From Ruditapes philippinarum (taxonomy: Eukaryota): a stretch of DNA of 64,000 bases. A program made the position numbers and the translations under genes. Below are positions 15,145 to 64,000 of the stretch, one piece after another. The notes beneath the pieces are model-generated. The model was not told where the DNA came from. It was given only the letters and a program-made list of their open reading frames with translations, and did not search any database. The stretch is taken from positions 1 to 64,000 of the forward strand of contig NW_026865359.1 of NCBI RefSeq assembly GCF_026571515.1, written 5' to 3'. Every line of letters begins with the position of its first letter. Positions within the stretch are counted from its first letter, which is position 1.

Positions 15145-15249
15145 ATTGACTGATTGATTGATTGATGGATGGATGGATGGATGGATTGACGGACTGACGG
15201 ACGGGCTTGCCGGCTGGCTGGCTGATGATTGATTGATTGATTGATTGAT

Positions 15250-15280
<31 letters not shown>

Positions 15281-15283
15281 TTG
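15145..15283. repeat. Compound tetranucleotide microsatellite (GATT/GATG/GACG/GGCT/ATTT)
   Basis: Directly visible, about 350 bp upstream of the gene A ATG. Confidence 0.9.
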
Positions 15284-15630
15284 ATCTAAAACATCTCAAA
15301 TGAACTATATGATTAACAAGTTTCACATCAGCTTAGAAAACACATTTTGTGAGTTTACATATTAAGGTTGACTGTGATGGGTAATGGGAATTTCTAAATA
15401 ATTGGCAAGAATATTTCATTTATTTTCATTAAAAATTAGGTTTTACCTTGGTTTATTTTCAACCTATTTTGATTTTCTTGATTGCTAATAAGAATTTGAA
15501 TTTAAATAAAATTCCCATGTTTGATTATAAATGCTTTCTGCACAGTATGCAGCGAACTTCATCCATGATTTATTAGAGTTCCTATTTGTTGTTTTAGTTT
15601 TTTGCTGTTGTTTTTTTTTTTCAGCACACA

Positions 15631-16360
15631 ATGACAGACAAATATTATCGACTAGTTACCATTTTGGTAAATATATGTCCTGGCCCTCTACGGGAATTGT
15701 TTCTGAAACAGGCAGCCGGAGACCCTAATCTCAAGACACCATACACTACATTAGATGCTTATTTAGCGTTCAGGAGAAAAGATATCAATAGAGTTACCCA
15801 AAAACCGAAATGTGTTATACGAAAGGATCAATTTGATTTGTTATTTCCATCTGCTGGGCAAGGTCAAACAGATATCGGCGCATGGGATGTGACATTATTA
15901 ACAGCTCTGTTGAAAAACATTTTTAGCTTAGCCCAAAATGATCTTGTGTGTATCGAAAAAATCAGGACAATCAGAAATGAGCTCCAACATATCGCAGGTA
16001 CGTGTAAAATAACAGAACATGATTTTAAGAATATATACACAAACCTTAGTGTGAACATTGTAAACTTAGCATTATCTGTTAAGGGTCAAGTCTATGCAGA
16101 CAAGATTGAACAAGATATTAAAGAGGTAGAAAGTTCTATATTAACAGATCTAGGAGATGTGCTAAGGTCGTGGTACATGAGCAAAATCGTTAAGTTGGAA
16201 ACAAAAATAGAAAACCTTAAGGTAAAGATAGATGAAATAAAACAAGATACAGGCAAAACCATGAAGACACTGAATAAAACCACTGTCAAGCGAACACGAG
16301 CCGGAGGTAAAAGTTTGAAACGCTTCAAAACTGTTGATCATATACTTGAAAAAATGAGAG
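15631..16360 (+). CDS. Gene A coding exon 1: DZIP3/hRUL138-like HEPN domain and coiled coil
   Basis: Acceptor tttttcag at 15624, ATG at 15631, donor AG|GTAAGC at 16361. Sequence QFDLLFP..WDVTLL..RNELQH..ITEHDF, then heptad-like KLETKIENLKVKIDEIKQD. Confidence 0.88.
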
Positions 16361-22300: not shown

Positions 22301-25255
22301 GATTATGATAAGATAATAAAAAAATCCATAATGTGATGATAATAATAGATATAAAATGGTAGTTATGATTATGATGATGAAAGAGATGATAATTATGATC
22401 TTGATGATAATGATAGGAGTTATAATGATCTAATGCTGATGATCAGTGTAATGATTAATGATGATAATGTTGGTATGCAGGTGTGAATGACTCTGCATTA
22501 TTAATATCCTGATTATGATGTTGAAGAAGATAATGATAATATTTTAATGACGATAAAATGGCAGAAATGATGATTACGGAGGCAATGGTAATTATGGTTT
22601 CGATGAAGAGTATGGTTGTGATAACAATTTTGATGACAATGAGCGTGGTACTGATTTTAAAGTGATGAATATTAAGGTTATAATCATTTCGATATTAATA
22701 GGCATCATGATTATTTTATAAGGAAGGGGCATATTATGATGAATGATGATGATAATGACAATATTCATCATGATTTGAATAATGATGGACGTGATGCTGT
22801 TTTTATTGATGATGATGTTGATGACGATGATGGATTAGGTGATGATTTTGATGATGATAATAGTGATGAATATGATGATGACGACAACATTGATTTAACA
22901 AAGTTCATGACGGGGAGCTCTATTGATCAACACAAGCATCATTTTTTTAATGTTATATTGTGAAAAAACTCCTTAGAGCTTTATTCTTAACTGATAAAGC
23001 TCTTGGATGGCGTTACAGTACCACGTTTATCTTGGCGCTATTTGAGTCAAGATCGAAATACCGCGTACGGTGTTAAGTCTTGAATAGAATTCCACTGAAC
23101 GCACATTATAACTGTGCATTATTACGAATTCTAGATTATAAGCGATGAATAATTGCGCTTGGGTTATATCATTTCGGTTCTACCACACATCAACAAAAAC
23201 TTCTGCCCACCTTATATCAAGGTGCGTCTGATTTATTTCAGCGCGTCACATTTTAATGGTTTCGTCACATATCAAAATAGAGATCATCAACGGTAATTTT
23301 ATTGCAAATTTACACGCACTTTTGGTCCTTCTATATCCAAAAGGGAAAAGTGCAGGTGGTGTAAGATATAAAATAGCACACAATACATCGGACTACATAG
23401 AGTCATTGTGCCCCCACCCCCACAGTTAGCGTTTAACATGTTTGTAGACTAAGTGAATTGTGACTTTAATGCTGAGTCCATATGTGTTGTATGCTTTATA
23501 TCTTAAATAGGTAAATTTGATCATGCCAAGTTGTATTAAGGTGTAATGATGTTGTATATTGGGAAGATGAAATAAGTTTAAGAAAAAAGTGTAATAGTAA
23601 GAGGTTGTTATGAAAAACCAAACATTATAAGAAAGTTCTATTTATTATCATGATTATTATCTTCTTATATAACTCGTATTCCTCAGAAAAATCTTGGATA
23701 ATTTTAATTTCAGTGAATTTAAAGGCATTTGAATTAACAATATATTCTGTGATAAATGTATGGTTCAATGTGACCAAAAACTGTCAGTTTATTCATTTCA
23801 GTGTAGAACAATGATCAGTCAAATATCACTGTTTAAAAACTGCAACAATTGTATTCTAAATAAACAACCTATTTACTACTACATTGTCTACACCTTTAAA
23901 AAAAGACTTGATAAAAGTCCTGTACGCAGAACATGTCTGTTTGATTCTATATATATGGTGTTATATTATATACAGCGTTCAAAAATTAATATGAATCCCT
24001 TTCGGTAACGCTTCATTCATTTGGCTAATGAGTAAATACGGTAATTACAAATGTACACGATATAGGGCTCGAATCTAAGATCACTTTCACTTGAATAACA
24101 GATAAACAAACGTACCACTGGAAAACCTCTGCCCTTTATTTAGTATCATTATTCAAGTACATCTACACAAACACATACCTGTATTATATTTTCTTAAAGG
24201 TCTAGAACATACACATTAATATTTTAGGAAGTGATTTTTTTAATATATAAGCACTTTCATGATGATGAAATTCCAGGAGGTAAACATGTTTTGTATAAGC
24301 ATTAGATTTTGACATCATTTGTCAATAATACTGTTTTATTCATGTATTATTATTATATTTCAGTCCGAACACATCATCCTATAACAGAGTAAAGATGATC
24401 CAAACGCATACAATTAAAACTCCTGAAAATGTGGAAATTTACGAGATGGAAGAATGTTGTCAACATCCAGATGGGTCATTTCTCTATTCAGCCAAAATAC
24501 AAGTATCATCAGTTAATGATAATAAAGATGATTCCATCTATACATCTCAGAGATATAAAACTGTTATTATTCATATCAGTTCAGACTTTGAATACCAATG
24601 TTACTACAATACGGATATAAAAGAAGACTGGTATACTACAAAACATATCTGCTGTACTGATACTGGGGATGTGGTGATGTCTGTGAAAAGAGAATTAAGA
24701 TTGTATAGAATATCAAGCGGAAGTCTTCAATTCATCAAATCTATAGATGTGGGGTTTGAGTGCACAAATATTTCCTTCTTCAAGAATAAGATTAACTGTT
24801 TTACTTATGGGGCATCATTAATTTTAGATACAAATCTAAATATAAAGAGAAGAGTAGAACTCATGGAAATTGCTGCCGACAATATTTTACCATGTTCATT
24901 ACAAAAGTACATCAGTACTTGGGATTCTGATTTTGGCAATAATTGTATCATATGTCAGGATCCCAGACTTAAGCAACTTAAATATTTAAGAAATGAAGGA
25001 TTTCTACCTGAGTGTATATGTGCTGCTACTGAGGACAGTGTATTCGTATTTGGAAAACAGGCTGGGGACTTCAAGATTTTACAGGTGAACACTGACTTGA
25101 TGGTGCTCTCAGAAATATGTAAAAACAATGAAGAGATTTTCCAGTTTCAACAAATGTATGAATATAAAATGGTGTTTGACAAAGATAATTCCAGATTAAT
25201 CATATTCTCAACAGCTACCGGGAACGCATTATTTCGTACAATTTACTTAGAGTAA
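15631..25255 (+). CDS. Gene A (spliced, 889 aa): HEPN_DZIP3-like + coiled coil + degenerate nSTAND3-like domain + nSTAND3-like P-loop NTPase + C-terminal beta-propeller-like domain
   Basis: Exons 15631-16360, 16582-17073, 17372-17425, 17620-18090, 18295-18325, 24364-25255. All introns are GT..AG with phases 1,1,1,1,2, giving one open 2670-nt frame. Motifs: WDVTLL...IRTIRNELQH (HEPN), ISGPRGSGKTT (Walker A), VVIIEDLGG (Walker B). Colinear with gene B. An acceptor 6 nt before the ATG implies an unlocated 5' UTR exon. Confidence 0.85.
16582..17073 (+). CDS. Gene A exon 2: degenerate (pseudo) nSTAND3-like NTPase domain
   Basis: Phase 1-1 exon. LVVVSGYGKGLY sits at the Walker A position, SPTDWRHI follows, and LVVFLHPFG sits at the Walker B (hhhhDDxFG) position. 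Confidence 0.82.
17372..17425 (+). CDS. Gene A exon 3: 54-nt linker micro-exon (VESSMSQVEADPHYKNLL)
   Basis: tttttag acceptor (TAGTAG tandem acceptor), G|GTATGT donor, open in phase 1-1. Same size and position as gene B exon 50796-50849. Confidence 0.7.
17620..18090 (+). CDS. Gene A exon 4: nSTAND3-like P-loop NTPase
   Basis: ttcttgcag acceptor, AG|GTTCGT donor. KVIVISGPRGSGKTTLA, VVIIEDLGGKY, NVIITC. Confidence 0.88.
18295..18325 (+). CDS. Gene A exon 5: 31-nt linker micro-exon (DGNSVVYAGK), phase 1 to 2
   Basis: ttttcag acceptor and AG|GTTAGT donor. Supplies exactly the phase shift needed to join the NTPase exon to the terminal exon at 24364. Confidence 0.65.
20138..21603. mobile_element. 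Tc1/mariner-type non-autonomous element in gene A last intron
   Basis: 28-bp TIR CGAGGGT(G/T)GTTCAAAAAGTAATAGGACT, TA on both sides (20136-20137, 21604-21605), no transposase ORF. Confidence 0.88.
22270..22890. repeat. Degenerate (GAT)n tract; others at 18820-18900, 19740-20075 (CAT) and the duplicate at 61895-62570
   Basis: Directly visible trinucleotide low-complexity sequence. Confidence 0.85.
24364..25255 (+). CDS. Gene A terminal exon: beta-propeller-like (NHL/six-bladed-like) domain
   Basis: tatttcag acceptor in phase 2. About 296 codons of repeated beta-strand/turn pattern (HICCTDTGDVVM, PECICAATEDSVFVFG, MVFDKDNSRLIIF). AATAAA at 25392. Confidence 0.75.
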
Positions 25256-48463: not shown

Positions 48464-49136
48464 ATGGCGGACAAGTATTATAGGCTTGTGTGTTTTCTAG
48501 TTAACATTACTCCCCGACCACTAAGAGAGTTATTCCTTAAGTACACGTGGACGGACCCAAAATTTTCAACTTGTTCAACCATTGATGCTTGTCTTAAATT
48601 AATGAAACATCAGCTTTACCTTTTAAAGAAGAAAAAAATAATCAGACAGAAACAATGGGAACTCCTGTTTCCATCAACACCTGGTAAGGTGGTAGATGAA
48701 ACATCTTGGGACATAACTCTGGTTATTATATTAATAGAGGAATTTCACGGAAACAAGCTTCAACAGGTAGAAGAAGACGCTATTTCCAAGATACGAGGAA
48801 TTCGAAATCGACTTCAGCACTTTGCTGAAACTTCAATTGATGATGCAGACTTTGACAATATGTGGACAATTTTAGAATGCGCAACCATTGATATAGCTAA
48901 GCAAATACAACCTTCACCTATGTACGTAAACGCTATTCAAGGAAACATTAACGAAACCAAAATTAATAATCTGCCGAATCTCGGAGATTCTTTACGTTAC
49001 CTATATGAGACTATTATAATTCAAATGAAATCTGACATGGAAGATATGAAAGAAATCATGGAAGAACTTGCTGAAAAATGTAATGAATCTCGAAACATTC
49101 TTCTGAACACAACTGAGAAGCGTGTTGGACCAACTG
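48464..49136 (+). CDS. Gene B coding exon 1: DZIP3-like HEPN and coiled coil
   Basis: QWELLFP..WDITL..RNRLQH..IDDADFDNMW. Acceptor tttacag at 48457, donor G|GTATTA at 49137. Confidence 0.88.
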
Positions 49137-52100
49137 GTATTATAGTTACTCTAATATTAATTCATCCTGGCATTATATACTCCATCGCAATGATTATTTT
49201 TTAATTTTTATTAGATTATTTTTTCTTAATTCGTCCAAAGATATGATTGGATATAACTCGTGTGTTAACATGGGTTTGCAGTTGCAAAATATATGAACAA
49301 ATATGCAATCTAATTAAGAAAACAGCAATGAATGGAAGCGAAAGGATATCATTTTGAGCTTAAAACGCAAAATCATGAGTAAAAACAAATGATTGGTTTG
49401 GATTGCAAGATGGTAGAAAATCTGATTCAAAGCAATGTTATTAATACCTAAGATGGTCCCAATTATTTTTGTTTTAAAAGTGTTTTAAAAATTCCGAATT
49501 TATTTTTGTTCTTTTATAGGTGAAAAAGTAAAACGAATGAAAACAGTTGACCATATTCTTAAAAGACTAAATGGTATGTGGAATTCAAGTAACCTAAAAT
49601 CAATTATAAACCATGGCTTCAAAACTTACAAGTGCCTTACTAATTTGTTATATATTTAACGTACTTATGCTGTGTTTTGTAATTAAACAACTTTGATCCG
49701 TTTAAAATAAGTTGAATATTTATTGTTCATTTAATATTGACAGGGTAAAGTAAGATGTATAAATAAATAAATATATTCATTAATCTGTTCATTTATAAAT
49801 CATTTCGAAAGATTAAAACAAATTTTAGAATATTAACTTTCTCTACAAATGCATCGCCTAAATAAGAGACAAATCATTAAATAAAATATTTCCATTAAAC
49901 AGTAAAAATACCATCATCCTATTGTACAACTTATTCATTTCTGAAATGATTTGTCAAAATTACATTAATATATGTGTCATTAATCCTCATTAAAAAGAAA
50001 AATAAATACGTTTTTAAATTTTTATTCATGTTTCAAGACAATTTCACCATGTCGATGAAAGAGGACTTGCCAAATAACTTCGATAGTCCACCGGAAGTCG
50101 CTGATATCAAAACAAAGCTGCGAGATGTTCACCACGTCGTTGTTACAGGGTCAAGGGGTAGTCGGTATATCGAAGCTGCTCTAGCTTCATTACAAAGTAT
50201 GGACTACAATCATAATCGATGTGTTGAAATGAAAAATTCGTGTGACTGGCGACACATAGACCCGGATGAAGTGGATCTTGTATTATGCCGAGAACCTTTT
50301 GGCGACTATGTGTTTGATAAGGACAAGACAAAATCTATGGCAGATATATTCAGTAGTATGCTACAAGTTGCAAAGATTTCTGAAAAGTACAAGAACATAG
50401 ATATTGTGATCGTGTCCGAGAAGGAAATACTCCAGGAAGTATTAAAGTTCACGGAACATGACCTTCTTCAGGAAGTGGTAGAAGTTTATCAGCCTACAAC
50501 GGAATCAGATCCAGCAGATCTAACAGGTTAAATGTTCTTTTTGTACTTATGTACTTGGAAGTCTGCCACTTTTCTAAACGATATGCAATTGGATCATGGT
50601 TCTTTTATTGATAATACTCTGATTGGATAAAACAGTTTAATATTTCTATGATACAGCAGAATAATAAAGATTGAGAAATAAGATTTATTAACGAGTTACA
50701 TATAGATAAAACAATATTGTTTGTGTCTGAACATGTACAGAAAAAGTTGTTGATTATAAAACATAAGTTAAATTTACTTCTTATACTTCGAATAGGTACA
50801 TGTGGCAATTCCGAGATGGATTTTGATCAAGCAACACGGAATCAGCTGGGTAAGAGAAAACAAATCTATTATTTATATATCAGTTAAGTTCATTTACGAA
50901 AAAAATCAACTTAGTTTTCGATTTCCGCTTGAATTGCAGAATTATAAGTAACAGGTAAAGTAAAATGTTCAAAAGAAATCTAAAAGCATAAACTACATGT
51001 AATCAGTTAGATAAGTAACAATAAACCAACAATAATGGCATTAATTAATGTTTCAATATTTTTCGATAAAAACAATCAATGAATTACTTTAAAAGTAGAT
51101 TCAATTCAATTCAGGGGCTCATTGACATGCCGGGTCAGAAATTTTTTTTTGAAATAAATTTTCCATTTGATGTTGGTCTAGACCAATATTTTCTTGTAAA
51201 AATTTCAGATCATTTGCTCTTTTCGCGCAATTTGTTTTTTTTTTCCAGAAAATGTCGATCAAACAGTGTGCCATGATAAATCTATATGCATGCCTATGTA
51301 CTTTCGGTATATTAATTGTTCAATTCAACAAATGATTAGAAACTCTTGATTTTAATTTGCACTTCGATAATGATTTGAAGGCAATATGTACAATCACTTT
51401 CGACCATAATCTTCTAATTCGATACCATTTATTACTGGTGTTACAATTTCAGGATACAATTTTATATGTGGTTTGTGTAGTTATGTGCTTTAAAATATTC
51501 TAGAATAAACACCAAAAGGAATGTGGTATAGAATTTTCAACATTTAATAAAAATGAATATCATGAGAGAAAAAAATATTTTTTCAAACAAAAATCGTTTC
51601 AGATTTAACTGCGGTATTTGTTGAGCGGTACAAAGATGACAACCTGCATCCCGCTAGTGTTGTAAATGAGGCGAGAACGACATTTAAGAGAGACAAGGTT
51701 ATTGTTATAACAGGGCCGAGGAAATGTGGAAAGACTACTCTGGCTGTAACGCTAGCATCAAGGTACCAGAAAAACCAGTTTCTGGTTCTCAACAAACCTG
51801 ATGACATGAAACTAATAAGGCTTGGCTGTATTTGTACTGTATTAGTTGAGGACTTTGCGGGGAAAGGCAGTTACAATGGTACCTATGCAGAAGCTTGGTT
51901 AAGAGAATTTGAACTGCTGTTCAGTGCCGTATGTTCTGGAAAGCTAAATGTTATTATAACGTGCGAGAAGAGAACACTTCTTAAATGCAATGAGGAAAAC
52001 GGTCCTCACCCAATTCTCAAAAACACCATCGTTCTCGAGCAAGTCAGCAGAACTGTTAAGCAGGAATCAACTAGTACTGGTACTATTTTTCATGGTTTTG

Positions 52101-55100
52101 TATTTTTGTAATAACTTTTTAAATAATTACAGTGACAGGAATTTAATGTTATTAGTATTTAAAGATATTTTTTGTAAGTAATATTTGTTTGAGTGGATAT
52201 CATTTTTCACAATCTTATTTTCATAACAAATATACATTTACAGATTTCAATGACACAGCCGCCATTGCAACACGTACTGTACAAAGGTGTTCGTTCAGTA
52301 TGGAAACGTAAGTTGAGAGTTCATTTTTTCGTTTATCCAATTGTTACTTTTAGATTAGTATTATTTCTCCTGAACTAAAACTTCTGTAATCAAAAATTTG
52401 ATGAAAAATCAATTATACATAAGTGCAGTGTGACGCCGCATTTTTATACGCCCGAAATAATATCGGCGTATATTGTTATGCACTTGGTTGTTCGTCCGTC
52501 CGTCTGTCCGTCCGTCCGTCTGTTAAAGGGTTGTATTTTTCGGTCTGTATTTTTTGAACCGGTTGAAGGAAATTCAAAGTACTTGGCAGACATATTTACC
52601 ATAATCAGACATATTTACCATAATCAGAAGATGTGCAGAGCGAAGGTTTGACCTTTCTCATGTCAAGATCAAGGTCTCACCTAGTCATTTTGTTTTAATA
52701 TCAAAATGTTTTGTCCGCTTTTAATCTTTTGAACCGATAAAAAGAAATTAAAGCTTTTTGGCATACATATTACTTATATTGAAACGGTGTGCAGAACACA
52801 AGTTTGAACTTCCTAAAATTAAATTTGACCCCGCCCCGGGGATACATTGATTTACATAGACTTATATAGGGATGTTCGTGTCTGGTCTGTATCTTTTGAG
52901 CCAGTGAAAAGAAATTGAAACTATTTGAAATGTTGTTAATCATAATGAGATGATATGCAGAGCGCAGTTTTGGACTACCTCAGATCAAGGTCAAGGTCAC
53001 ACTGACTCATTCAAAATACTTATTTAAAGTGTATATATTACAAAAGGAGTTGACAATGTATGAATTTATTGATATGTTTCCTCCAAATATATACATATAT
53101 ATATATATGAACATGTATTAACCTCTCTTTATTTTTATTACTTTATAATGTTGTTGTTTTTTTTTCTTTTCAAACTTTATTTTTTTAGATTTTTGTTTCT
53201 GTTAAGATTAAAATAATTAAGGACCTTTTATTGGTTTCTATGATTTAATTATTTTTTAATGAGACAATCTTATTAATTGAAATTGATGTTACTTGAGATA
53301 TGTAAATTCACTAAATAATAATAAGTTTTAAATGAGGCATATAAAAAGTCAAGTAACAAATCCAAGATCTCAGTTATTTGGCATGTATTATTACACAGAA
53401 GAACCCTGCTATTTTTTCCAAGTATCATTTCTCTGATATTATAAAATGGCTGTGCCCAGAGGGTTAGAATATGGGCAGGTCTGACACAGTTTACGTGTAC
53501 ACAGATTTGTATAGTACGCATGTTTTAAAAGTCTTTTCCTCCACTTTACAACATGCAGAGCATAAATATTTAGCTTGTATCATCACTTTTTAAAAGTAGA
53601 ATTATTAGTTTTGTGATGAATGTTTGTGTGAGTATTGACGTTATAAGTGTAACGGGAGGTTATAAAAAGAAGAAAATTAGTTGTAAGCATTTTATTATTT
53701 ATATGCACAATATTTTGTGCTTCTGAATTTCTGATATAATATCATTTTATGTTTCTTTGAATTGTTATCATTTAAAATCAACAATATTGTTGTTTTCTGT
53801 CAGTATATATACTCCGTGACAATTGCATTGAGATAATTAATCACCATAGTAGTTTTTAAGGGCATGAGTGGTGACATGTCAGGGGTATGTTCTCCACAGC
53901 CGAAGGTGTGGCATATACAATTGTCACTAAGTATTCATGTGACAAGAGCATATCTCTTTGACATGTATCAATATAGATCTCAATATTGATAATTGAAATA
54001 AAACATGTTATGAACAAATTTTATAAATGGTATCCTCTCTGTTGAACATTATTTTTGACAACTTTAAATTTTATTTACTTAAAACAAATTTGCATTCGGA
54101 CGTATATTGCCACGCTATGCTGTGTTCTTGTTTATTCTGCCAAGGTTGATATTTTTGAACATTGATAAATTAGATTTGTCATCAAAATGGTCACCAAATA
54201 TTGTTAAAAAGTATTACTTTATAACTTCATAGAGAATCATTATTAATAACAGACATTAAGTTGTGATTATAAAATTTAAACAATTACAAAAACAAACATT
54301 TTCATTCTTTAGAAATAACAACTTTGTTTCCAACGAATCAGACCACGTTGAAAAGAGTACACACTCTTCAGACGCATTCAACAACATAAAAGACACGTGT
54401 TCAATGAATGAGAACACTATTCTTTGTCTAAATTCAACTGGAACAGTCTTAAAGCTTGACAAAGAGCTCGATGTCGAGGCAACGTTTTTAACAGAACAAC
54501 AAACGGCTTTTGAAAGGATATGTTGCTTAGATGATGATAGGTTCCTTCTTGTGAATGGCAAAGAAGTTTCTATATATGAACTGAAGTCAAATGAGATTCA
54601 CCTCATAACGACAACGATTCTTGACCACGAATCTGACTTTATAGCAAAGGGAAAAAAAGGAATGATAACAATCTTAAACAAGAACATCATATACGAGTAC
54701 ATGTATGACGGTTACTTTGAATTACAGTTTAAAAAGCTCCTTCCTATGAAACCATTGATGGACAGTTTCGTAACAGACGCGTCCGTCATATCTGAACGAA
54801 ATTGCGTTATCGTTGTAAAACAGGGTTCCATTCAATCGATAACATACAAAGAAAAAAGGACAATTGAACGAGTACTATATTTTGAAAGAAATGAAATTCA
54901 ACCAGTGGCTGTTTGTGCTGGAAAGGAAGTTGTACTTATTCTTTGTCTGCAGAACAATCAGGCGAAAGTTTTGAAGTTTGGAATTGATCTTGAGAAACTT
55001 GGATCTATCAGGCTTGACGAGGTTGCATACAGCCCATTCAACGTCTCATCAATGATGTATGATTCAAACTTATCCAGACTTCTTATCACATACAGCGGAA

Positions 55101-55162
55101 AACTTGACGCTTTCGTAGGCGGTAAGATTCGTTGTTCCTTCTTCTTACAAACTGGGCGTTAA
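48464..55162 (+). CDS. Gene B (spliced, 886 aa): paralog of gene A, HEPN_DZIP3-like + coiled coil + degenerate nSTAND3-like + nSTAND3-like NTPase + beta-propeller-like
   Basis: Exons 48464-49136, 49520-49573, 50038-50526, 50796-50849, 51603-52079, 52244-52307, 54313-55162. GT..AG introns with phases 1,1,1,1,1,2, giving an open 2661-nt frame. MADKYYRLV vs MTDKYYRLV in A; IRGIRNRLQH; ITGPRKCGKTT; VLVEDFAG. Acceptor again 6 nt before the ATG. Confidence 0.87.
49520..49573 (+). CDS. Gene B exon 2: 54-nt micro-exon (GEKVKRMKTVDHILKRLN)
   Basis: ttttatag acceptor, G|GTATGT donor. The peptide matches gene A GKSLKRFKTVDHILEKMR. Confidence 0.85.
50038..50526 (+). CDS. Gene B exon 3: degenerate nSTAND3-like domain
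   Basis: VVVTGSRGSRY at the Walker A position, DWRHIDP, LVLCREPFG at the Walker B position. Ends PTTESDPADL, like A's PTTEDSPVDL. Confidence 0.83.
50796..50849 (+). CDS. Gene B exon 4: 54-nt linker micro-exon (GTCGNSEMDFDQATRNQL)
   Basis: aatag acceptor after a pyrimidine tract, G|GTAAGA donor, open in phase 1-1. Confidence 0.7.
51603..52079 (+). CDS. Gene B exon 5: nSTAND3-like P-loop NTPase
   Basis: The frame is open upstream of the listed ORF (51806): KVIVITGPRKCGKTTLA...TVLVEDFAGK...NVIITC...HPIL. tttcag acceptor, G|GTACTA donor. Confidence 0.87.
52244..52307 (+). CDS. Gene B exon 6: 64-nt linker exon, phase 1 to 2
   Basis: tttacag acceptor, AC|GTAAGT donor, open (DFNDTAAIATRTVQRCSFSME). 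Confidence 0.72.
52441..53010 (+). mobile_element. HINE-like fragment in gene B last intron
   Basis: tttttatacgcccg..cggcgtata hairpin, GTCC microsatellite, tcaaggtcaaggtca core repeats. Confidence 0.6.
54313..55162 (+). CDS. Gene B terminal exon: beta-propeller-like domain
   Basis: ttctttag acceptor in phase 2. RICCLDDDRFLLV, PVAVCAGKEVVLIL and MMYDSNLSRLLITY parallel the motifs of A's terminal exon. Confidence 0.75.
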
Positions 55163-55504
55163 ATTATGAAATCAGTCGTTTGCCCAACGGTTTATGGAGA
55201 TAATTAAAACGTTTTATGAGACTAGGGTTTAAATTTCAGTGTATTTTATTTTTTATTCACATTTTACTTGCAAAGAATTTGTATCATAGGTACATTATTT
55301 TTCCTTATCCTGCAACAACCTGATACCATTATGATCATGTATATTATAATTGTTGGCCCTTGTTTGTCCAAAATCGGTACATTTTGTATAAATAGTGGAT
55401 ATTTCTTTCTGTAATGATAAGGTCTGATCCCATCATGAATTATAAAGTCGTGGCCCTTCAGTAGGTTAACTTTTTTTTAGTTTCCTTGTCTGCATGATAT
55501 GGTG

Positions 55505-56065
55505 GCTGATTTGTGCCACTCGTGTTTTCCGCGATCCAGCCAAGCAAAAAGTCGAGAATTAACAAGTTATAACGGCGGGGTTGCGGGACGAAAACACGCT
55601 AAATAGTCAGGGTGCGGGACGTAGTTTAATAACTAAAACTTCGCCCCGCGTGGGCGCGGGACGAGATTTAAGAAATAAAACGGCGGGGTCGCAGAGCAAA
55701 AACACGCTTATTAGCGCCCCCGCTAATTAGCGGATTTCGCTCCGCGCCCGCGCCATTTTAACTTTTAACATATCGACTTTTCGCTTAGCGGGGTCTTGGG
55801 ACGAAAACACGCTAATTAGCGGGGGCGCGCGGCGAATTTTTATTTATTAAAACCCCGTTATATGTAAACCCCGTCGTTTTATTTCTTAAATTTCGCTCCG
55901 CGCCCCCCCCCCCCCCCCGGGCCGAAGTTTTATTTATTAAACTTAACCCCGCGCCCTCGCTAATATGCGTGTTTTCGCCCTGCGCCCCCGCCATTTTAAC
56001 TTGTTAATTTTCGACTTTTCGCTTGGCGGGGTCGCGGGGCGAAAACACAAATGGCACAAATCAGC
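55505..56065. mobile_element. GC-rich fold-back MITE about 340 bp downstream of the gene B stop
   Basis: GCTGATTTGTGCCA ... TGGCACAAATCAGC ends; the arms are reverse-complementary over most of the length. Confidence 0.78.
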
Positions 56066-56940
56066 ATGACGACAGTTTTAATCTTAAAATCAATAACTTG
56101 CATATGTCTTTAACTTTAGCTCATCGCAGTTCACACACATTTCTTAACGTAAGCCATAATGATACCTCGATGTCCGTTGGCCGTTGCCAGTTGCTTCCTC
56201 ACTTGCTGGATGGCTTTTGATGAATCTGTACGGACTTAATACTAGTACTTAGAAAGTCCTTTGCTTAGCTTCTGCTTTCGGTCAAAATCTATAATTATTG
56301 TTATGTTGTTATTTACACATGTACAAATATTCTAAATAAAATATGTTTAAACCAACTTGCTTAAATGCTTTCAGTCCGCTAAACAAAATTGCTACCACAT
56401 CAAGAAATACATAAATTCTTTTAAATGACACCTTCTCAACTACTTTGTAGATTTTGATTAAACTGCATAAAGAAAAATCCATAGGTAATCCTTTAATAAT
56501 AATAAAAGTTACTCAAATGGTTCTGGTCTGTTGAGCAAGGAACATCTTGGTAAGGTAATTTTGTCTTAAAAGATCATATCCTCTGGTAAGCTGTTAAGTG
56601 CCAACGAGACCCTTTTGTTGACGGCTTATATTTTCTAACTTTTTGACCTTATTTTAACTACTTTTTAAAATGAATTGAATGTGTAACAAATATGTATCGG
56701 TTTAACTTCTTTTGAACGAGTATATTCCTTATGCATACAACAAGCGTTTCGGCCCTAAATGGGTCGAAATTGATAGAAATATAGGCATTTTCATGATATA
56801 AAAAGTATTTTTTCTCTAAAACCCGACATCATATACATTCATATACATATATAATTTATTCTATTCAGTAGTAGTCATCACAAAATGGCAAAATAATCAA
56901 TATTGTTTATGCGCCAAGTTTTTTATATGTATTATTTCAG

Positions 56941-56974
56941 GGTTCCAACTGACAGACAAACAGGATAGTAAAAG
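56941..56974 (+). CDS. Candidate alternative 34-nt linker micro-exon (GFQLTDKQDSK), phase 1 to 2
   Basis: ttattatttcag acceptor, AAAAG|GTACGT donor, open in phase 1-to-2. Ends AAA AG like gene A exon 5. Confidence 0.45.
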
Positions 56975-57763
56975 GTACGTCAAGGAGTTTCAAAACATCT
57001 TTTGTTTTTTAGATTAAATTATAATATCGTTATATAAATCCTAGTTATGGCCCCATTCAAGAACAATATTCGCAAATAATGGTTGGTATGTCTGCCGGAC
57101 TGGCGGTAGCTATATAGAATTATAGATCACTGCTTTTCTGGTCAGTAACTGAATAAAATTCCTGATTGCGTCTCTTTTATTCAATTTGTTTAATCTCATT
57201 GCTTAATAGCCTTATCATTACTTCTACTCAACACTACTGTTTAGAAATTACCAACATGTAAATAAAACTACCATTTTATGTATTAACCTAAGATTGCTTG
57301 ACAATACACATATATACAATTTGTATCTGACAATGCATTGTGTTACAATCATGTCATGCTGTAACTGGTCATAAACTAACCGACAACAGCAAACGGCCAT
57401 TTTTAATTGTATGGGTCGTCAGACAAATCAAATAATGGTAGCGAAATTTCAGACCCTGATGCCGAAAGTAGACCGCTTTTCTGAAGCGGTTACTTCCCTT
57501 TATATGTACACTAGCGCCTAAAAAATTCAGGGGAGATCACTGCGTAAAGATGATCTAATGACAGGCGCATTAATTTACAAGCAAAATAGTTCCCGAATGG
57601 TCGACGATTTCTTAATAGTGTTTATTATTTATAGATATATATGCTGATAGTAAGCTCCATGATTATTTACATCTGTGTTAAACAACAGTTAGCATCGAAA
57701 TAATAAGGGTTACAAACCCTTATTTAGAATAATATGGTTTTCTTCAGGCCGTTAACATATAAC

Positions 57764-57836
57764 TTCACCGTGGCCGAGGGGTTTGCGCGCTCGCTTATGA
57801 AGCGAGAGGTCTGGAGTTCAAATCCCAGTTAAGGCA
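57764..57836 (+). repeat. tRNA-derived SINE head / pseudo-tRNA
   Basis: A box TGGCCGAGGGG, anticodon-like arm CTCGC-TTATGAA-GCGAG, B box GTTCAAATCC. The acceptor stem does not pair well. Confidence 0.6.
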
Positions 57837-58739
57837 ACTCTGATTTTTTCAAATTGTTTAAGTCAAATAAACATTGAACTGAATATCAGTGTTGCGATTA
57901 GTCTTTTAGCCAATTTACTACAATTAAAACGCTGGAAAGCATTGGTGGCACTATACAAAAACGAATTGGTTTATAACCTCACAACCTTCACCTTTCTGAC
58001 ATACTGAGACCCAAACAAATTCAGCGCCTTCTTTGCTTTGATTATCAACCGCTTCTGCAGCGAATACTCCACCGCCGCTGCGATTGACCAACCGCTTCTG
58101 CAAAAGCTATGGCCAGTGTGGAAATGCATGTTATTAGATAAAATCACGATTGCATGTACATGTATTTTCCAAATTTGATTAAGAAATAATATCAGTCTGT
58201 GAGGTGTTTATCGGCTTTTTAACCACCGGTTTGGAATTGACCACGAAGGCCGTAGGCCTTAGAAAATATAACAGCCGCAAATACAAGTAGTAAACAGTGT
58301 TTATTGGCAGTTAAACACCTGGGTTTTTTCTTTGTCTATAGTGACAAAATCACGAGGAGTGTTAGAATTATTATTTCATGTAACAAAATGGGTTAATTTA
58401 TTTTGTAAAAGTTAACAAAAAGCACATTTGTAGTTGTCATTCTTTTTAGACATCAATCTAGGACAAGAGGAAAGGAAAGCTTAACTGAAAAAACGACTTT
58501 TAGAAAATATTTCTTGAAATGTTTCATCTTATCTTATGACAATTAGCTAAATATCTGCTTTTGTGTCAGTCGTCCGCCGTTACACAACAGCTCCTTCTTA
58601 TACTCTATTAATTTTGTAAGCTATGTATGCATTCCACATTTAAATAATATGTATTTTGACCTGACGATATGAAGACATCGTCAGGTTATGTTTACCACTG
58701 TTATTTACCTTTCTTGAACTGACCAGTTTTGGTGTCATA

Positions 58740-58812
58740 GTCGTGACACCGGGTAGGGTTGGAATCTATGATCCTTGGATGTAGAGACAGACTCATTAAC
58801 CACTAGGACACC
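58740..58812 (-). repeat. Degenerate tRNA-derived SINE head
   Basis: The minus strand reads GGTGTCCTAGTGGTTAA...GATTCCAACCC (A/B-box-like). Confidence 0.45.
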
Positions 58813-58859
58813 AATGCCTTTCATGCAGTACAACTTAGTTGTTTAAAGTCTGAGTGACT

Positions 58860-59090
58860 GGCTTCCCTCACTGGTGGTTACTTTGCTGGATTTGATCCGC
58901 TCTATCTCAAGATCTCTTTCGTTCATCTGTAGCTCAAATCTTATTTTCATCTGTCTTCTTTCTTCTTCACGCCTTCGGGCTCTATCCTCTCTGGCTAGGC
59001 ACTCTTCTTCCTTCTCTTAAAGAAACAATAAATCGCTGCCGAATAACCCTAGCTTTTCTCCTATTCTTAATCATTCGTCATAATACATAT
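58860..59090 (-). mobile_element. Ty3/gypsy-like gag N-terminus remnant
   Basis: The minus strand reads LRIGEKLGLFGSDLLFL*EKEEECLAREDRARRREEERRQMKIRFELQ, resembling the G..LGL.G..L + ERE-rich start of gypsy gag; contains a stop. Confidence 0.5.
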
Positions 59091-59189
59091 TGCTCAGATC
59101 ATCAAAATCTCAAAAAAGTAATTCCGGACGAGCCCAAAATTGTCAATTTGTGGTTTAACTTCTGAGCGGTACTTGTGATTATTACTTAC

Positions 59190-59850
59190 GAATTGCTGCA
59201 CTTCTTAGACTTGCTGCAATATAAGACTTGCTGCAGTATTGGACTTGCTACAGTATTGGACTTGCTGCACATTTGGACCAGCTATTCTTCTTAAACTTGC
59301 TGCGCGCCTTGGACTTGCGGCATTATAAGACTTGCTGCAGTATTAGACTTGCTGCACTATTGGACAAGCTAAGCTTCTTAGACTTGCTGCAGTATTGGAT
59401 GTGTTACAGTATTGGACTTGCTACAGTTTTGGACTTGCTGCACTATTGGACGTGCTCCACTTTTGGACTAGCTACTCTTCTTAAACTTGCTGCGCGCCTT
59501 GGACTTGCGGCATTATAAGACTTGCTGCAGTATTAGACTTGCTGCACTATTGGACAAGCTAAGCTTCTTTGACTTTCTGCAGTATTGGATGTGTTACAGT
59601 ATTGGACTTGCTACAGTTTTGGACTTGCTGCACTATTGGACGCGCTGCGCTCCTAAGACTTGATTCTTTTCTGGGAAGCGGACCGTTCCTAAGAATTGCT
59701 TCTTTTCTGGGAAGCAGACCGTTCTTAGACTTGCTTCTTTTCTGGGAAGCGGGTCCGTTCTAAGACATGCATCTTTTCTGGGAAGCGGACCGTTGCTAAG
59801 GCTCAACTCTTCACTAGAGAGTCGATCGTTTTCTAGACTTGCTGCTTTAT
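59190..59850. repeat. Compound minisatellite: 17-bp units (GACTTGCTGCAGTATTG) followed by four ~36-bp units (...CTTTTCTGGGAAGCGGACCGTT...)
   Basis: Direct tandem repetition, with a higher-order repeat of about 187 bp (59290 block recurs at about 59477). Confidence 0.9.
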
Positions 59851-60357
59851 TTGGTTTCTTCACTGGACCAGTAAGTTGCTAAAAATAAGCTTTCCGGCAA
59901 TATTTGAAGCTCCTTTTGAATTCGATTTTTTTCTTCTTTTTTTGTCCAATTTCATTTCATTCAAATACGCAACGCGTGAACCGGATAGAACGCTACAATA
60001 GTAACGTTACGTCAAAACAAATAAATATACAAAATGGCGGATATTTGTATTCCTTTTATAAATAAAATAGGTATTTTGAAAGGTTTGCTAATGCTGTCGG
60101 ACCGTATATGTCACGGACCGAATGTGGCACACGTGTGACATATTCGGTTCGAATTTGTCACACGTGTGATATGTTCGGTCGAATATAGCAGACTCTTCTG
60201 CCGAAAATGGAACATAAAATGTGCCATATTCGGTTGCATTTAGCTTTTCATACTCACCAAAAGGTATTTGTCACTTACCAAAAATGCGCATAAAATGAAA
60301 ATACGAACGTATACTTCACATGTGCTTTTTAATTAAATATAGCTGATTTCAATAGAA

Positions 60358-60501
60358 NNNNNNNNNNNNNNNNNNNNNNNNNNNNNNNNNNNNNNNNNNN
60401 NNNNNNNNNNNNNNNNNNNNNNNNNNNNNNNNNNNNNNNNNNNNNNNNNNNNNNNNNNNNNNNNNNNNNNNNNNNNNNNNNNNNNNNNNNNNNNNNNNNN
60501 N
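60358..60501. other. Assembly gap (144 N)
   Basis: Run of n characters. Confidence 1.
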
Positions 60502-61676
60502 GCATAGATATTTTAATGTGTATAAAAAACTTTTAAAAGTTTATAAAAAAGAAATATTTCACCGAATTTTTTAAAAGTGTAAGTGCTTATTTGTAAAATG
60601 TTTAAAATACTTATATTGGCTTCCAAGTCGTTAATTTGTACGTTATTTCTCTGATAAATTAATTCATTAATAATTCCGTTTTAAAATACAATGTTATTGC
60701 TAAAGTTTGCATGGAAAGAAATTGTTATGTTTGGTGTTAATGGCATTCTTTTCCTCCATTTGTTTTTTTGTTATATGAAAAAATCATTACTTTGGTAAAA
60801 TCATTAAACAATATGCCGCAATTAATTTGAACATCTGAAGTCGTCTTTGACGAAAACAGTCGCAATATAAAGTTATTTTTGTCATACGACATTTAATAAA
60901 GATACAAATTGTATGTTTATCATTATTTTACCATTTTCTCATTTCACAGTGCGAAAAAGTGAGGAATTTGAGTAAATGAAGGTTCAATACTGAATTTATT
61001 GAAAGAGTATAATAAAAGTTCCTTGCACATCAGTTTTCTGGTGATAACACCGGTGCTTTATAATTTAATCTTACACCAACCTGTACGCAAACCTGAGTGC
61101 TTTAAAATGGCGTAATTCCTTTCCTTTTATGAATGAATGAAGTGCTAAGGATGACGTTATTTCGTCGTAAATATTCAAACACTGCTATAAATAATAGAAA
61201 GAGCATCGAAACACGAAGCTTATGATTAGTCAGATTGCCGAGTGTTTTGATGTTCTTTCTCTTTTGTTGCATAGCCAACAGTAACCAATGTACGATCATC
61301 TAAATTTTACATTTCTATCGTTATCCCTTTCCTTATCGACACAATAAGTAAAGCCCAGAAAAATTAGCCTATCAAAAAGCATAAATTTTCATATCCCCAA
61401 CAGACAGTGCGTAACTGGAGTGCAGGTACACAACATGCATGTAATCACATGATGTTGTAATAGATTGGAGTTCACTAATAACTAATATATGCACTCCAGT
61501 TAACATTTCATAATATTCACACTGGCGATAGCTTTCGCAGAAGCTGTGGGTCCATCGCAGCGGCGGTGTAGTATTCGTCGCAGAAGCGGTGGATAAAATA
61601 CGGCCAAGTTTAAAGAAATACTATAGAACAGTTTTAATTTTGCCTATATGTCTATATGAAAACTCAGGAAAACGTC

Positions 61677-64000
61677 CATAAGTTCGATTTTCTTGAAATA
61701 CTTCTGCTCATCTAGAGGCATACAAATTTATCAAGTTACACGAATGTATTAAATGTTTATCAATGTTATAGTAAACATACAATTAAAATATAAAAATACC
61801 CAACAGATGAATGCGATCAACGATTTCTTCCCTTTATTTACATTGAAATACATATCAAAACAGACATCGGACTTCATATCATTTATCATAGAAATAATGA
61901 TAATGTTGTTGAAAGTGATCAAACCAAGCTGATTTTGATAAGATAATAAAAAAAAATCTATAACAAATGTGATGATTATAATAAATTTAAAATGGAAGTT
62001 ATGATTATAATGATGAAATTGATGATAATTATGATCTTGATGATAATGATAGGAGTAATTATGATCTAATGCTGATGATGAGTGTAATGATTAAGATGAT
62101 TATGCAGTTGATTATTATTTTAATAATGATAATGCTGGTATGCAGGTGTAAATGACTATGCATTATAACGATGCTGATTATGATGATGAAGGTTGATGAT
62201 GATAAGATTTTAATGATGATAAGAATGGCAGTAATGATGGTTGCGGAGGCAATGGGGGTATGGTTTCGATGAAGATAATTTGGGTGATAACAATTTTGAT
62301 GACAATAACGTGATATTGATTTTAAAGTGATGAATATTAAGGTTATAATCATTTTGATATTTATAGGTGTTATGATAATTTAATAAGGAAGAGGCATATG
62401 ATGATGATGTTGATGATGGTGGTAATGATGATGACCAAAATCATCATAATTTGAATAATGATGGACGTGATGATGCTTTTAATGATGATGTTGATGACGA
62501 TGATGGTTTAGGTGATGTTTTTGATGATGATAGTGGTGAATATTATGATAACGACAACGTTGATTTAACAAAATTCATGACGTGGAGCTTAACGAATATA
62601 GCTCTTGTAAGGCGTTATAGCACCACGAGTAATGCTGTCTTGGAGCTATTTCAGTCAAGAGCTAAATGCGCGTACGGTGTAAAACTCGAAGAAAATTCCA
62701 CTGAAATAGCTCATGATAAAAACGGTGCATAAATACTAATTCTAGATAACAAGCGATAAATTGTTGTTAAGGATATATTATTTCGGTTCAATCACACATC
62801 AACAAAAACTATTGCCTGATTTGTTTCAGGACGTTACATTTTAATGGTTTCGTCACATATCAAAATGAAGATCGTCACCGGTAATTTTATTGCAAATTTA
62901 CACGCACTTTTGGTCCTTCTATATTCAAAAGGGAAAAGATTAGGTCGTGTTAGATATTAAATACTATGCAACACATCGGACTACATAGAGTCATATTGCC
63001 CCCACAGTTAGCGTTTAACATTTAATGTTTGTATGCTAAGTGAATGGTGACTTTAATGCCGAGGCCCTCAGTGTTGTTTGCTATATATCTTAAATAGGTA
63101 AATTTGATCATGCCTATTTGCATCAAGGTATAATGATGTTGTATATTGGGGAGATGAAGTTAAAGAAAAAAGTGTAAATTTAAGGCGTAGTTATGAAAAA
63201 AACCAACCATTATAAGAAAGTTATATTTATAACATGATTATTAACTTCTTATTTAACTAGTATTCCTCAGAGAAATCTCGGATAATTTTAATTTCACTGA
63301 ATTTAAAGGCATTTGAATTAACAATATATTCTGTGATAAATGTATCGTTAAATGTGACCAAAAACTGTCAGTTTAATAATTTCAGTGTAGAACAATGATC
63401 AGTGAAATATCACAGTTAAAAAACTGCAACAATTGTATTCTTAATTAACAACCTATTTACTACTACATTGTCTACACCTTGAAAAAAAAAGATTTGATAA
63501 AAGTTCTGTACGCAGAACATGTTTGTTTGATACTATATATTTGGTGTTATACTATATACAGCGTTCACAAAATTAATATGAACCACTTTCGATAACGCTT
63601 CCTTCATTTGGCTAATGATAAATACGGTAATTACACGATATAGGGATCGAAATTTGAATTACAGATAAACAAACGTACTACTGGAAAACCTCTGCCCTTT
63701 ATTTAGTATCATTATTCAAGTACATCTACACAAACACATACCTGTATCATATTTTCTTAAGGGTCTAGAACATACCCATTAATATTTTAATAAGTGATTT
63801 TTTAGTTAATAAGCACTTTCATGATGACGTAATTCCAGGAGGTAAACATGTTTTGTATGAATATTAGATTTTAACAACATTTGTCAATAGTACTGTTTTA
63901 TACTTGTATTTTTATAATATTTCAGTTCGAACACATCAACCTATAGCAGAGTAAAGAAGATCCAATCGCATATAATTAAACCTCCTGATAATGTGACAAC
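61677..64000 (+). repeat. Segmental duplicate of about 22047-24438 (3' part of gene A last intron plus terminal exon start)
   Basis: Colinear near-identity by eye, e.g. agttcga(c/t)tttcttgaaata...tctagaggcatac, the GAT-rich tract, and ggaaaacctctgccctttatttagtatcattattcaagtacatc in both copies. Confidence 0.92.
63926..64000 (+). CDS. Start of a third beta-propeller-like exon (close paralog of gene A terminal exon), truncated by the window end
   Basis: tatttcag acceptor conserved. SNTSTYSRVKKIQSHIIKPPDNVT vs A's PNTSSYNRVKMIQTHTIKTPENVE. Preceded by about 2.2 kb homologous to gene A's last intron. Confidence 0.75.

Follow-up and report, generated by a model that had tools for sequence, protein, structure and literature searches.

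A transcribed, apparently headless propeller exon beside a HEPN-nSTAND3 gene in Ruditapes philippinarum and its possible use as an alternative last exon

Genes and features of the locus

The window analyzed in this study is a stretch of 64,000 nucleotides of Ruditapes philippinarum DNA (contig NW_026865359.1, positions 1 to 64,000, forward strand). In its genes A and B, a PF18738 HEPN domain with the Rx4H motif precedes nSTAND3 NTPase modules (PF20720) and a propeller at the C-terminal end. Annotated full-length paralogues in R. philippinarum are LOC132736991, LOC132758493 and LOC132718587. A 31-nt family linker exon was identified in A (18295-18325) and in D (approximately 99135), and the NCBI models of E, F and G contain it as well. 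It carries the motif D-G/C-N-S-V-V/M-Y-A-G-I/K-S.

Gene B is the nearest same-strand gene upstream of a further propeller exon, exon C, and is the proposed source of a head for it. The NTPase exon of B (51668-52079, + strand; Walker A GPRKCGKT) ends in phase 1 with the donor CTG/GTACTA. The own linker exon of B has a length of 64 nt (52244-52307, + strand, phase 1 to 2) and ends in AC. The own propeller exon of B (54313-55162, + strand) is the only one of the B type in the genome and shows 17-21% identity to the A-type propellers. The head of B is 37-47% identical to A-type heads, which counts against a pairing of the B head with an A-type propeller.

Past the window, the 123-kb contig contains the complete gene D and no other cassette, so the suggestion that more cassettes may follow is not supported. 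The HEPN and NTPase exons of D are frameshifted in the assembly. D was considered as a second cassette with a dead head and rejected: 21 of the 24 extra bases lengthen homopolymers, for which reason the frameshifts are attributed to unpolished assembly, and the stretch is near-identical to paralogue F. A search of the whole R. philippinarum assembly identified seven such propeller exons in all, and exon C is the only headless one among them.

Exon C and its predicted fold

Exon C occupies positions 63926-64000 of the window (+ strand) and continues to contig position 64808, with the stop codon at 64806-64808. It starts in phase 2 and remains uninterrupted for 294 codons. The acceptor (63905-63925, + strand) is composed of a pyrimidine-rich run and CAG in the same context as in A, D and E, and is used in RNA. 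The first-pass annotation had placed a phase-2 acceptor of an A-type propeller exon at 63926 and had raised the question whether the exon stays open for about 295 codons; the acceptor was confirmed, and no stop or frameshift precedes the terminal codon.

The amino acid identity to the propellers of A, D, E, F and G ranges between 64 and 74%. Exon C shares with them the single-exon propeller of about 295 codons, the conserved blocks and the protein end TIYLE. The alignment of A, C, D and E has 304 columns, of which 154 are invariant, and the framework blocks conserved in A, D, E, F and G are all present in exon C. No in-frame ATG was found near the start; the first methionine is located at approximately codon 45.

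The AlphaFold model of exon C (pLDDT 81, pTM 0.81) comprises about 24 strands in a six-bladed propeller. The best structural matches in the PDB were the NHL domains of Brat, TRIM2, TRIM3, Thin and Mei-P26. Whole-domain TM scores to NHL propellers were 0.61-0.70 (0.67-0.70 for Brat and TRIM2) at a sequence identity of 9-12%. According to this model, exon C is predicted to encode a six-bladed NHL-like beta-propeller. A Pfam search at E<=0.1 identified no family, the NHL signature included. Among 1.84 billion cluster representatives, the propeller gave only three hits. The homologous-protein and representative searches returned no protein from this contig and none containing exon C, and its first 31 nt had no match in a metagenome scan.

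Constraint and diversification

Against paralogue F, exon C shows five gaps, every one a multiple of three. The same comparison yields 24 gaps over 2.1 kb of intron and 8 over 360 nt of UTR, most of which have lengths not divisible by three. The 880 nt of exon C contain zero stops and zero frameshifts while the flanks have gained approximately 11-22 gaps per kb relative to these paralogues. Allelic RNA variants of exon C retain the frame as well. Mismatches in the exon amount to 14-15% to F and A and 12% to G; those in the intron are lower (9-10%). The propeller block evolves faster than the neighbouring non-coding DNA, with the frame retained.

The pairwise dN/dS of exon C was 0.8-1.4, similar to that of the complete genes among themselves. 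Since the complete genes also have values around 1, dN/dS alone is uninformative on function. Private changes at conserved sites were found at 20 of 174 positions in exon C and at 23 of 177 in the intact E. The private N:S of exon C is 23:4, and this ratio together with the 20 private conserved-site changes lies at the high end of the family. The share of variable positions was 40% in predicted loops and 14% in strands (Fisher p=5e-7). The constraint measures fail to separate exon C from the intact A and E, and, like the propellers of complete paralogues, it combines a kept frame with diversification. The marks of a pseudogene fragment, namely stops, frameshifts, framework loss and silence, are all lacking in this transcribed exon.

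Search for a head upstream of exon C

The spacer between the stop of gene B and the cassette (55163-60099) contains no family exons and no prominent long ORF. Several AATAAA/ATTAAA sites are located 3′ of the B stop, and tandem repeats of 17, 36 and 190 nt were found at 59193-59800. The tblastn search (E<1e-3) identified no head exons in 55163-63925, and phmmer (E<=10) found no head remnant in 402 six-frame fragments of this interval, with the frameshifted head of D as positive control. In agreement with the first-pass annotation, the HEPN and NTPase exons are thus missing here: no PF18738 HEPN exon with the Rx4H motif, as present in A and B, could be found by either method, and the interval likewise lacks the pair of nSTAND3 NTPase exons, the 31-nt linker exon and the family linker peptide.

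Contig C6644 was considered as the lost head of C and rejected. It is collinear with window positions 9580-17945 at up to 97.7% and represents a haplotig of the 5′ part of A; genome-wide, no other unpaired A-type head was found. C6644 and C1963, which carries F, look like alternative haplotypes. The cassette is likely to be headless in this haplotype.

An assembly gap of 144 N (60358-60501) lies within intron-derived DNA, so that no frame needs to be kept across it. Paralogue F is collinear over the gap: 60176-60354 corresponds to F 141415-141235 and 60531-61468 to F 141069-140154. The distance between the matched points is 166 nt in F and 177 nt in the window, including the 144 N. Because collinearity and spacing match F within 11 nt, in the same order and orientation, a head hidden in the gap was ruled out, as had been argued before from matches to the last intron of A on both sides. 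Those matches are real; the left one is a high-copy repeat, and the right one (61150-61468) is family-specific with four copies.

The left flank is formed by a MITE-like repeat (60100-60357, + strand, placed by fine alignments) with at least 70 genomic matches at 79-90%, at which the duplicated block has its 5′ limit. The 3′ part of the repeat is found in A (18607-18798) and F (141415-141235) at the corresponding intron position, where its 5′ part (60100-60175) has no counterpart. As the left flank is solely a high-copy repeat, a false scaffold join at this point would look identical. A mis-joined haplotype of gene A, previously named as a possible objection, was rejected, since C is 14-18% diverged from every paralogue compared to 2-5% for haplotigs in this assembly.

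Origin of the cassette

The remnant of the last intron (60176-63904, + strand) comprises only its 3′ part. It is collinear with F and A, with gaps mostly not multiples of three, and 84-85% identical to F 141415-138649 and A 22051-24363. The duplicated block extends from the old last-intron repeat over the propeller exon and the 3′ UTR for at least 5 kb further. The cassette is a partial copy, from the 3′ side, of a HEPN-nSTAND3-propeller gene of the A/F/G type; exons 1-4 and the family linker exon are missing from the assembled sequence.

The homology of C begins at F 141415. The high-identity block between D and F (2.9% mismatch) stops at F 141433; from there through the propeller exon the mismatch is 11-12%, and the identity of D and F drops from 97% to 88% at the old-repeat site. 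The heads of D and F are near-identical but their propeller blocks differ by 12%, and the change sets in at the intronic repeat. Recombination at this repeat may have brought the block here or removed its head. The nearest relative of C shifts from F and A in the intron to G in the exon and UTR. RNA variants include an expressed C allele with an F-type patch, and protein P0001 has C-like ends and an F-like middle. These observations suggest that the propeller block is an exchangeable unit, bounded by the last-intron repeat, which can persist and be expressed without its own head.

Transcription of exon C and the candidate linker exon

RNA contigs from four studies (four runs, sampled from other individuals than the reference) match exactly over L015 3423-5332, which corresponds to exon C and about 1 kb of 3′ UTR. 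RNA coverage of the UTR extends to about contig position 65830, and AATAAA/ATTAAA signals are located at 65761, 65845 and 65850. The RNA end together with these poly(A)-type signals gives the distal exon C a 3′ end of its own. Coverage starts at L015 3423-3425; no RNA contigs of the four runs were found over L015 2801-3400, which leaves approximately 620 nt upstream of exon C uncovered. X4 record 24, a contig of 326 nt from a confirmed RNA library, aligns with 77 nt at L015 3423-3499, and its other 249 nt lie elsewhere and are absent from 60502-63925. Exon C is transcribed, and splicing at the acceptor at 63926 connects it with upstream exon sequence of at least 249 nt from outside 60502-63925. 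No read or contig was seen to connect any exon of gene B, or the donor at 56974, with 63926. The cassette is very likely to be real, intact and expressed.

The alignment of X4 record 24 opens 2 nt before exon C, and the upstream exon therefore ends in AG. This end is compatible with the donor at 56974 and with any family linker exon. Since AG is the terminal dinucleotide of the family linker exons too, the contig agrees just as well with exon C having its own head, carried by a different haplotype or missing from the assembly. A direct join of 52307 to 63926, proposed earlier, is indeed in frame and is disfavoured because exon 4 of gene B ends in AC.

The 34-nt open micro-exon candidate at 56941-56974 (+ strand, phase 1 to 2) was found as first described, with a good acceptor and the donor AAG/GTACGT. 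The arithmetic of the phases was also right: 52079 leaves phase 1, the 34-nt exon starts in phase 1 and ends in phase 2, the donor at 52307 likewise leaves phase 2 and 63926 accepts phase 2. Using a crude splice-site matrix, the candidate ranks second of 276 phase-compatible candidates. Its donor is among the two strongest of those ranked in the interval, and it is the only high-ranking candidate ending in AG. Approximately 0.9 equally good micro-exons are expected by chance per 8.8 kb of control DNA, so that on its sequence alone the candidate is not beyond chance. It is single-copy in the genome, and no homologue was found in the introns of A, B and D.

Discussion

The best overall explanation is that exon C is the surviving 3′ block of an A/F/G-type gene which is read from gene B, with a probability of roughly 40%. 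Transcripts from gene B would run past its terminal exon and join the cassette, most likely via the donor at 56974; that the upstream partner of exon C is transcribed from gene B is quite possible, if short of probable. The 34-nt exon, if defined and joined to 52079, would keep the frame from the B head into exon C, and the use of this path (52079-56941/56974-63926) is doubtful. The product would consist of the B head (HEPN RNase, degenerate NTPase and active NTPase) with an A-type NHL-like propeller replacing the one of B, and exon C would act as an alternative last exon altering the sensor. In its full form, one head of gene B would be combined with two propellers of about 20% identity by terminal-exon choice, the second having been captured via intronic-repeat recombination and wired by a new 34-nt linker exon. 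This is put forward tentatively and is itself somewhat unlikely. If true, an animal immune receptor of the STAND type would here swap its sensor at the level of splicing, observed soon after this arrangement arose by exon shuffling.

Exon C could instead be a transcribed relic, a young gene fragment in read-through or spacer-initiated transcripts whose open frame is left over from recent head loss or gene conversion. The donor at 56974 would then lie in an extended 3′ UTR of B with exon C untranslated, or a cryptic promoter would lie in the 55-60 kb spacer. The missing head, the lack of an early ATG, the private changes at the family's high end, the patch exchange with paralogues in RNA alleles and the shift of nearest relative between intron and exon/UTR are consistent with this, and the 249 nt of the X4 contig could be contiguous spacer ending at 56974. 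However, the intact frame between gap-rich flanks, the constraint similar to that of A and E and the complete framework blocks argue against a relic, which is considered rather unlikely. An independent third gene, with its head lost from the reference by a false or collapsed join at repeat and gap or by a deletion in the reference haplotype, is also unlikely. It would explain the high-copy left flank, with a 5′ part that lacks a match in A and F as expected of a repeat-mediated join, and the AG end shared by every family linker exon. It also fits with the unpolished stretches and haplotigs of this assembly (the D head; C6644 and C1963) and with the haplotype variation in content of HEPN/NTPase genes in a pearl oyster (PMC9646362). 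Against it stand the agreement with F across the gap, the lack of any unpaired A-type head besides the haplotig of A and, for a mis-joined A haplotype, the divergence of C.

It is improbable that the main role of the cassette is that of a store of variable patches, given or received in gene conversion between the family propellers, with incidental transcription. The mosaic of invariant blocks and hypervariable patches, the F-type patch in an expressed allele, the composition of P0001 and the contrast between heads and propeller blocks of D and F speak for this role, whereas known cassette systems have arrays in place of a single cassette, and exon C is spliced and has a long UTR. Splicing from the linker exon of gene A over 45 kb, the whole of gene B included, is highly improbable: its phase 2 and terminal AG fit and the propeller is of the A type, but read-through of the terminal exon of A and of the entire gene B would be required, and no sign of such transcripts was seen.

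HEPN/STAND receptor families have undergone a large expansion in bivalves and are thought to be NLR- or Avs-like sensors. If gene B is the partner of exon C, the locus would be a concrete case of sensor swapping via alternative last exons and of ongoing exon shuffling. Should the partner instead be a head that the reference lacks, the cassette would be a marker of misassembly or of presence/absence variation within a cluster of immune genes, which is ordinary for bivalves.

Proteins of the DZIP3/hRUL138-like type with HEPN, STAND NTPase and C-terminal repeats form NLR-like expansions in Pinctada fucata, and bivalve loci of this kind differ in gene content between haplotypes (PMC9646362); nSTAND clades have also been described (PMC8195603). 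The neighbours A and B resemble these bivalve proteins in the order HEPN, nSTAND3 and C-terminal propeller, in the tandem cluster and in the haplotype variation, whereas exon C is the C-terminal module alone and its propeller is an orphan, not LRR, TPR or WD40. With the NHL propellers of Brat, TRIM2/3, Mei-P26 and Thin, exon C shares the predicted six-bladed fold, at low sequence identity and with no NHL match in Pfam. Brat-NHL is an RNA binder, and an RNA-binding NHL-like propeller would suit an RNase-armed receptor.

The lamprey VLR LRR cassettes and the chicken pseudo-V conversion likewise involve headless sensor segments beside complete genes with signs of patch exchange. In contrast, there is one cassette and no array here, it is joined by exon splicing, and no somatic process is indicated. 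Partial duplicates and chimeric genes formed by repeat-mediated recombination are similar in that a 3′ fragment of a paralogue with a breakpoint in an intronic repeat lies beside a family member and is transcribed with foreign upstream exon sequence. The majority of such fragments decay, whereas exon C retains frame and framework residues as intact genes do. Alternative last exons with their own poly(A) sites alter the C-terminal domain of a protein. Exon C differs from them in that it comes from another paralogue lineage and needs a new linker exon for the frame from 52079; it resembles them in that two terminal exons of the same phase follow one head, each with poly(A)-type signals, and the distal one is spliced to upstream sequence.

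Organization of the gene family

The HEPN-nSTAND3-propeller family of the Manila clam, Ruditapes philippinarum, was mapped on the 123-kb contig C13846 of the 1.41-Gb assembly by tblastn, using the exon peptides of A and B as queries. Gene A occupies 15631-25255 and gene B 48464-55162; they are followed by a solitary A-type propeller exon (exon C) at 63926-64808 and by gene D at 96430-103723. Exon 1 of A and of B was assigned to the DZIP3-like HEPN family PF18738 and carries the Rx4H motif, PF20720 (nSTAND3) was detected weakly in exon 2 and clearly in exon 3 of A, and the C-terminal exons had no Pfam match. The Walker A motif of exon 3 is GPRGSGKT in A and GPRKCGKT in B. The first NTPase-like exon of A (16596-17087) and of B (49974-50531) does not reach the gathering threshold of nSTAND3 and has no proper Walker A motif (SGYGKG and TGSRGS, respectively), which fits a pseudo-NTPase paired with an active one. 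NTPases of the nSTAND type have been described previously (PMC8195603).

A search of the whole assembly with a propeller profile identified seven propeller exons, those of A, B, C, D, E, F and G. Each of A, D, E, F and G has its own A-type head (HEPN and NTPase exons). The suggestion in the first-pass annotation that more cassettes may follow is not supported. The sole spare A-type head, on contig C6644, is collinear with 9580-17945 at up to 97.7% identity and is, judged by this collinearity, a haplotig (the copy from the other haplotype) of A. The interval C6644:18001-28925 resembles the upstream region and head of A with 89-97.7% identity. The match ends within the NTPase exon (A 17945) and is followed by 8 kb of unrelated DNA; the other haplotype either carries a structural variant or is misassembled here. 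No protein encoded on C13846, and thus no annotated isoform, was among the protein-search matches.

Structure and coding state of exon C

At 63926, exon C is preceded by an acceptor whose context matches that in A, D and E. With the sequence extended past position 64000, exon C reads through 294 codons without interruption up to the TIYLE-stop of the family (stop codon at 64806-64808). The first-pass annotation had recognized the start of an A-type propeller exon at 63926 and had raised the question whether it stays open for about 295 codons. The AlphaFold2 model obtained from a ten-sequence alignment (pLDDT 81, pTM 0.81) is placed by Foldseek among six-bladed propellers of the NHL type, Brat and TRIM2/3 for example (TM 0.61-0.70). 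In the six A-type exons, hypervariable patches alternate with invariant blocks; 40% of the predicted loop residues are variable compared to 14% of the strand residues (p=5e-7). The pairwise dN/dS is 0.8-1.4 for all pairs, the complete genes included.

The mismatch of exon C is 14-15% to F and A and 12% to G, with a lower value of 9-10% in the adjoining intron. Between C and F, 24 gaps were found in 2.1 kb of intron and 8 in 360 nt of UTR, mostly not multiples of three, whereas all five gaps in the exon are multiples of three. Private changes at otherwise conserved sites are not more frequent in C (20 of 174) than in the intact, annotated E (23 of 177). By these comparisons, frame and scaffold of exon C are retained and its loops are diversifying, just as in the complete genes. 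With three matches among 1.84 billion cluster representatives, the propeller domain is lineage-restricted as far as sequence clusters indicate. A 270-aa propeller from a JGI contig (P0001) resembles C at both ends, sharing its two-residue deletion and having a similar tail, and F in the middle. It could represent a divergent C allele or a recombinant paralogue absent from the reference.

Missing head and assembly gap

Between B and exon C (55163-63925), no head exons were detected by tblastn (E<1e-3) or by phmmer (E<=10) with eight head queries against 402 six-frame fragments, in line with the earlier statement that HEPN and NTPase exons are missing there. As a positive control, the same phmmer search found all pieces of the frameshifted head of D. 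The 31-nt linker exon of the family, located at 18295-18325 in A (peptide D-G-N-S-V-V-Y-A-G-K-S) and also part of the NCBI models for E, F and G, has no counterpart in this interval.

The interval contains a 144-N gap (60358-60501). On either side of this gap, the DNA leading up to exon C is collinear with the last intron of the complete paralogue F (LOC132736991, C1963 minus strand): 60176-60354 corresponds to F 141415-141235 (84.5%) and 60531-61468 to F 141069-140154 (84.4%), with collinearity continuing from there to exon C. By length comparison, the flanking points are 166 nt apart in F and 177 nt apart in the window, including the 144 N. The estimated gap length is thus about right, and the gap lies in intron-derived DNA, with no room for the approximately 2.6 kb of head exons, in agreement with the argument against a hidden head previously drawn from intron matches flanking the gap. 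The flanking DNA on the right (61150-61468) is specific to the family, and each of its four copies lies in a last intron. On the left, 60100-60357 is a MITE-like repeat that occurs at least 70 times, which calls for some caution: the first 65-75 nt of the repeat have no counterpart in A or F, a pattern that fits recombination within the repeat and also a scaffold join through it.

Three further elements were observed in this region. An aspartate-rich open frame (DDDVDDDDGLGDDFDDD...), possibly a piece of a repeat element or the relic of a low-complexity exon, is conserved between the last intron of A (22736-22963) and the intron remnant before C (62451-62732); a low-depth odd joint in run X3 touches similar GAT-rich sequence. 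The element of about 90-100 nt at 61504-61605 has dozens of genomic copies with 92-95% identity, on other contigs often as inverted pairs about 2.9 kb apart, and probably forms the terminal repeats of a transposon family that is still young. Immediately before the cassette boundary, nested tandem repeats (periods of 17, 36/71, 87 and 190 nt) occupy 59193-59800, within the GC-richest part of the window.

A duplicated block with a shared boundary

The homology of C to its paralogues extends from the MITE-like repeat via intron, exon and 3′ UTR into the downstream flank, where it covers at least 5 kb and is common to D and F. A boundary at the same intron site was found between D (C13846:95310-106770) and F (C1963:145525-132727). 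Up to F 141433, over 4.1 kb that take in 5′ flank, head exons and the initial part of the last intron, their mismatch is 2.9%. Beyond this point it is 11-12% in the rest of the last intron and the propeller exon (about 29% in protein), and it returns to 4-5% from D 106770 on, so that heads and flanks together differ by 2.9-5%. This jump in divergence at the last-intron repeat site indicates that the propeller block has its own history within the family. D and F could be either alleles with a swapped or anciently divergent propeller block, or the product of recent head conversion.

The D head (C13846:96430-99050; HEPN and NTPase exons) carries about 30 small insertions compared to F and A. Since 21 of the 24 checked lengthen a homopolymer, in a stretch that hardly differs from F, the frameshifts are probably due to an unpolished long-read stretch rather than to decay of the gene. 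The propeller exon of D is intact.

Candidate micro-exon and expression of exon C

The 34-nt segment proposed as a micro-exon between B and exon C is present at 56941-56974 with a good acceptor and the donor AAG|GTACGT, and the splice phases given in the first-pass annotation, checked by counting, are correct. The segment occurs once in the genome, and the family introns contain no homologue of it. With a crude splice-site matrix, it ranked second among the 276 open candidates of compatible phase in the interval, and equally good candidates occur 0.9 times per 8.8 kb in control DNA of the same contig. Sequence alone is thus insufficient to establish it as an exon.

Four confirmed RNA libraries were among the runs containing exon C words. 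RNA contigs of four runs from four studies were placed on 60502-66500; exon C and about 1 kb past its stop were covered in all four, to about 65830, near which poly(A)-type signals were found, and several contigs match the exon C region exactly. The 620 nt upstream of exon C were bare in each of the four, which is the pattern of spliced RNA and not of DNA. In the confirmed RNA run X4, only 77 nt of a 326-nt contig were placed at the start of exon C, and the remaining 249 nt had no match within 60502-63925. The alignment begins two bases before exon C, so that the exon joined to it must have AG at its end. The 56974 donor (exon end AAAAG), one of the two strongest among the ranked spacer candidates, is compatible with such an end, and all family linker exons likewise end in AG. 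The AG end disfavours a direct join from exon 4 (ending in AC) or exon 3 (ending in TG) of B, and with it the 52307^63926 junction suggested earlier. Compared with the reference, the expressed C alleles carry clustered changes, most of them non-synonymous; none of these introduces a stop once linked changes are combined, and one allele has an F-type patch.

Proposed origin and use of the cassette

The best-supported reading is that of a headless, functional-looking propeller cassette, derived from recombination at an intronic repeat and expressed as a terminal exon. Recombination at the repeat would have brought the block to this place or removed its head, and exon C would now end transcripts that start farther upstream. 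On the same strand, gene B is the nearest source and the proposed path (52079^56941, 56974^63926) is in frame; its use of the cassette is therefore tentatively suggested, at slightly less than even chances, and the exact micro-exon path is more doubtful. Long-range use by gene A, whose linker exon has the AG end, is very improbable.

Exon C could also be a relic or part of an untranslated read-through transcript. The lack of a head would suit this, but the open frame and the exon gaps in multiples of three do not, and we regard it as unlikely, though the most serious rival. That C has a head of its own, absent from this reference or haplotype, is rather unlikely: the AG end would suit a family linker exon, but the gap offers no room and the only spare head belongs to a haplotig of A. 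A role mainly in gene conversion, to which the F-type patch would correspond, is improbable for an exon found spliced in RNA. Two findings are new here, a headless cassette that is expressed and a recombination boundary shared with D and F; the larger claim, if true, would be sensor switching through alternative last exons.

Bivalve genes combining HEPN, NTPase and repeat domains, with expansion and haplotype-level copy variation, were described for a pearl oyster (PMC9646362). In the clam Mercenaria mercenaria, the annotated family member LOC128551590 (P0007) stops soon after the NTPase exon and has no propeller. This head without a sensor is the mirror image of exon C.
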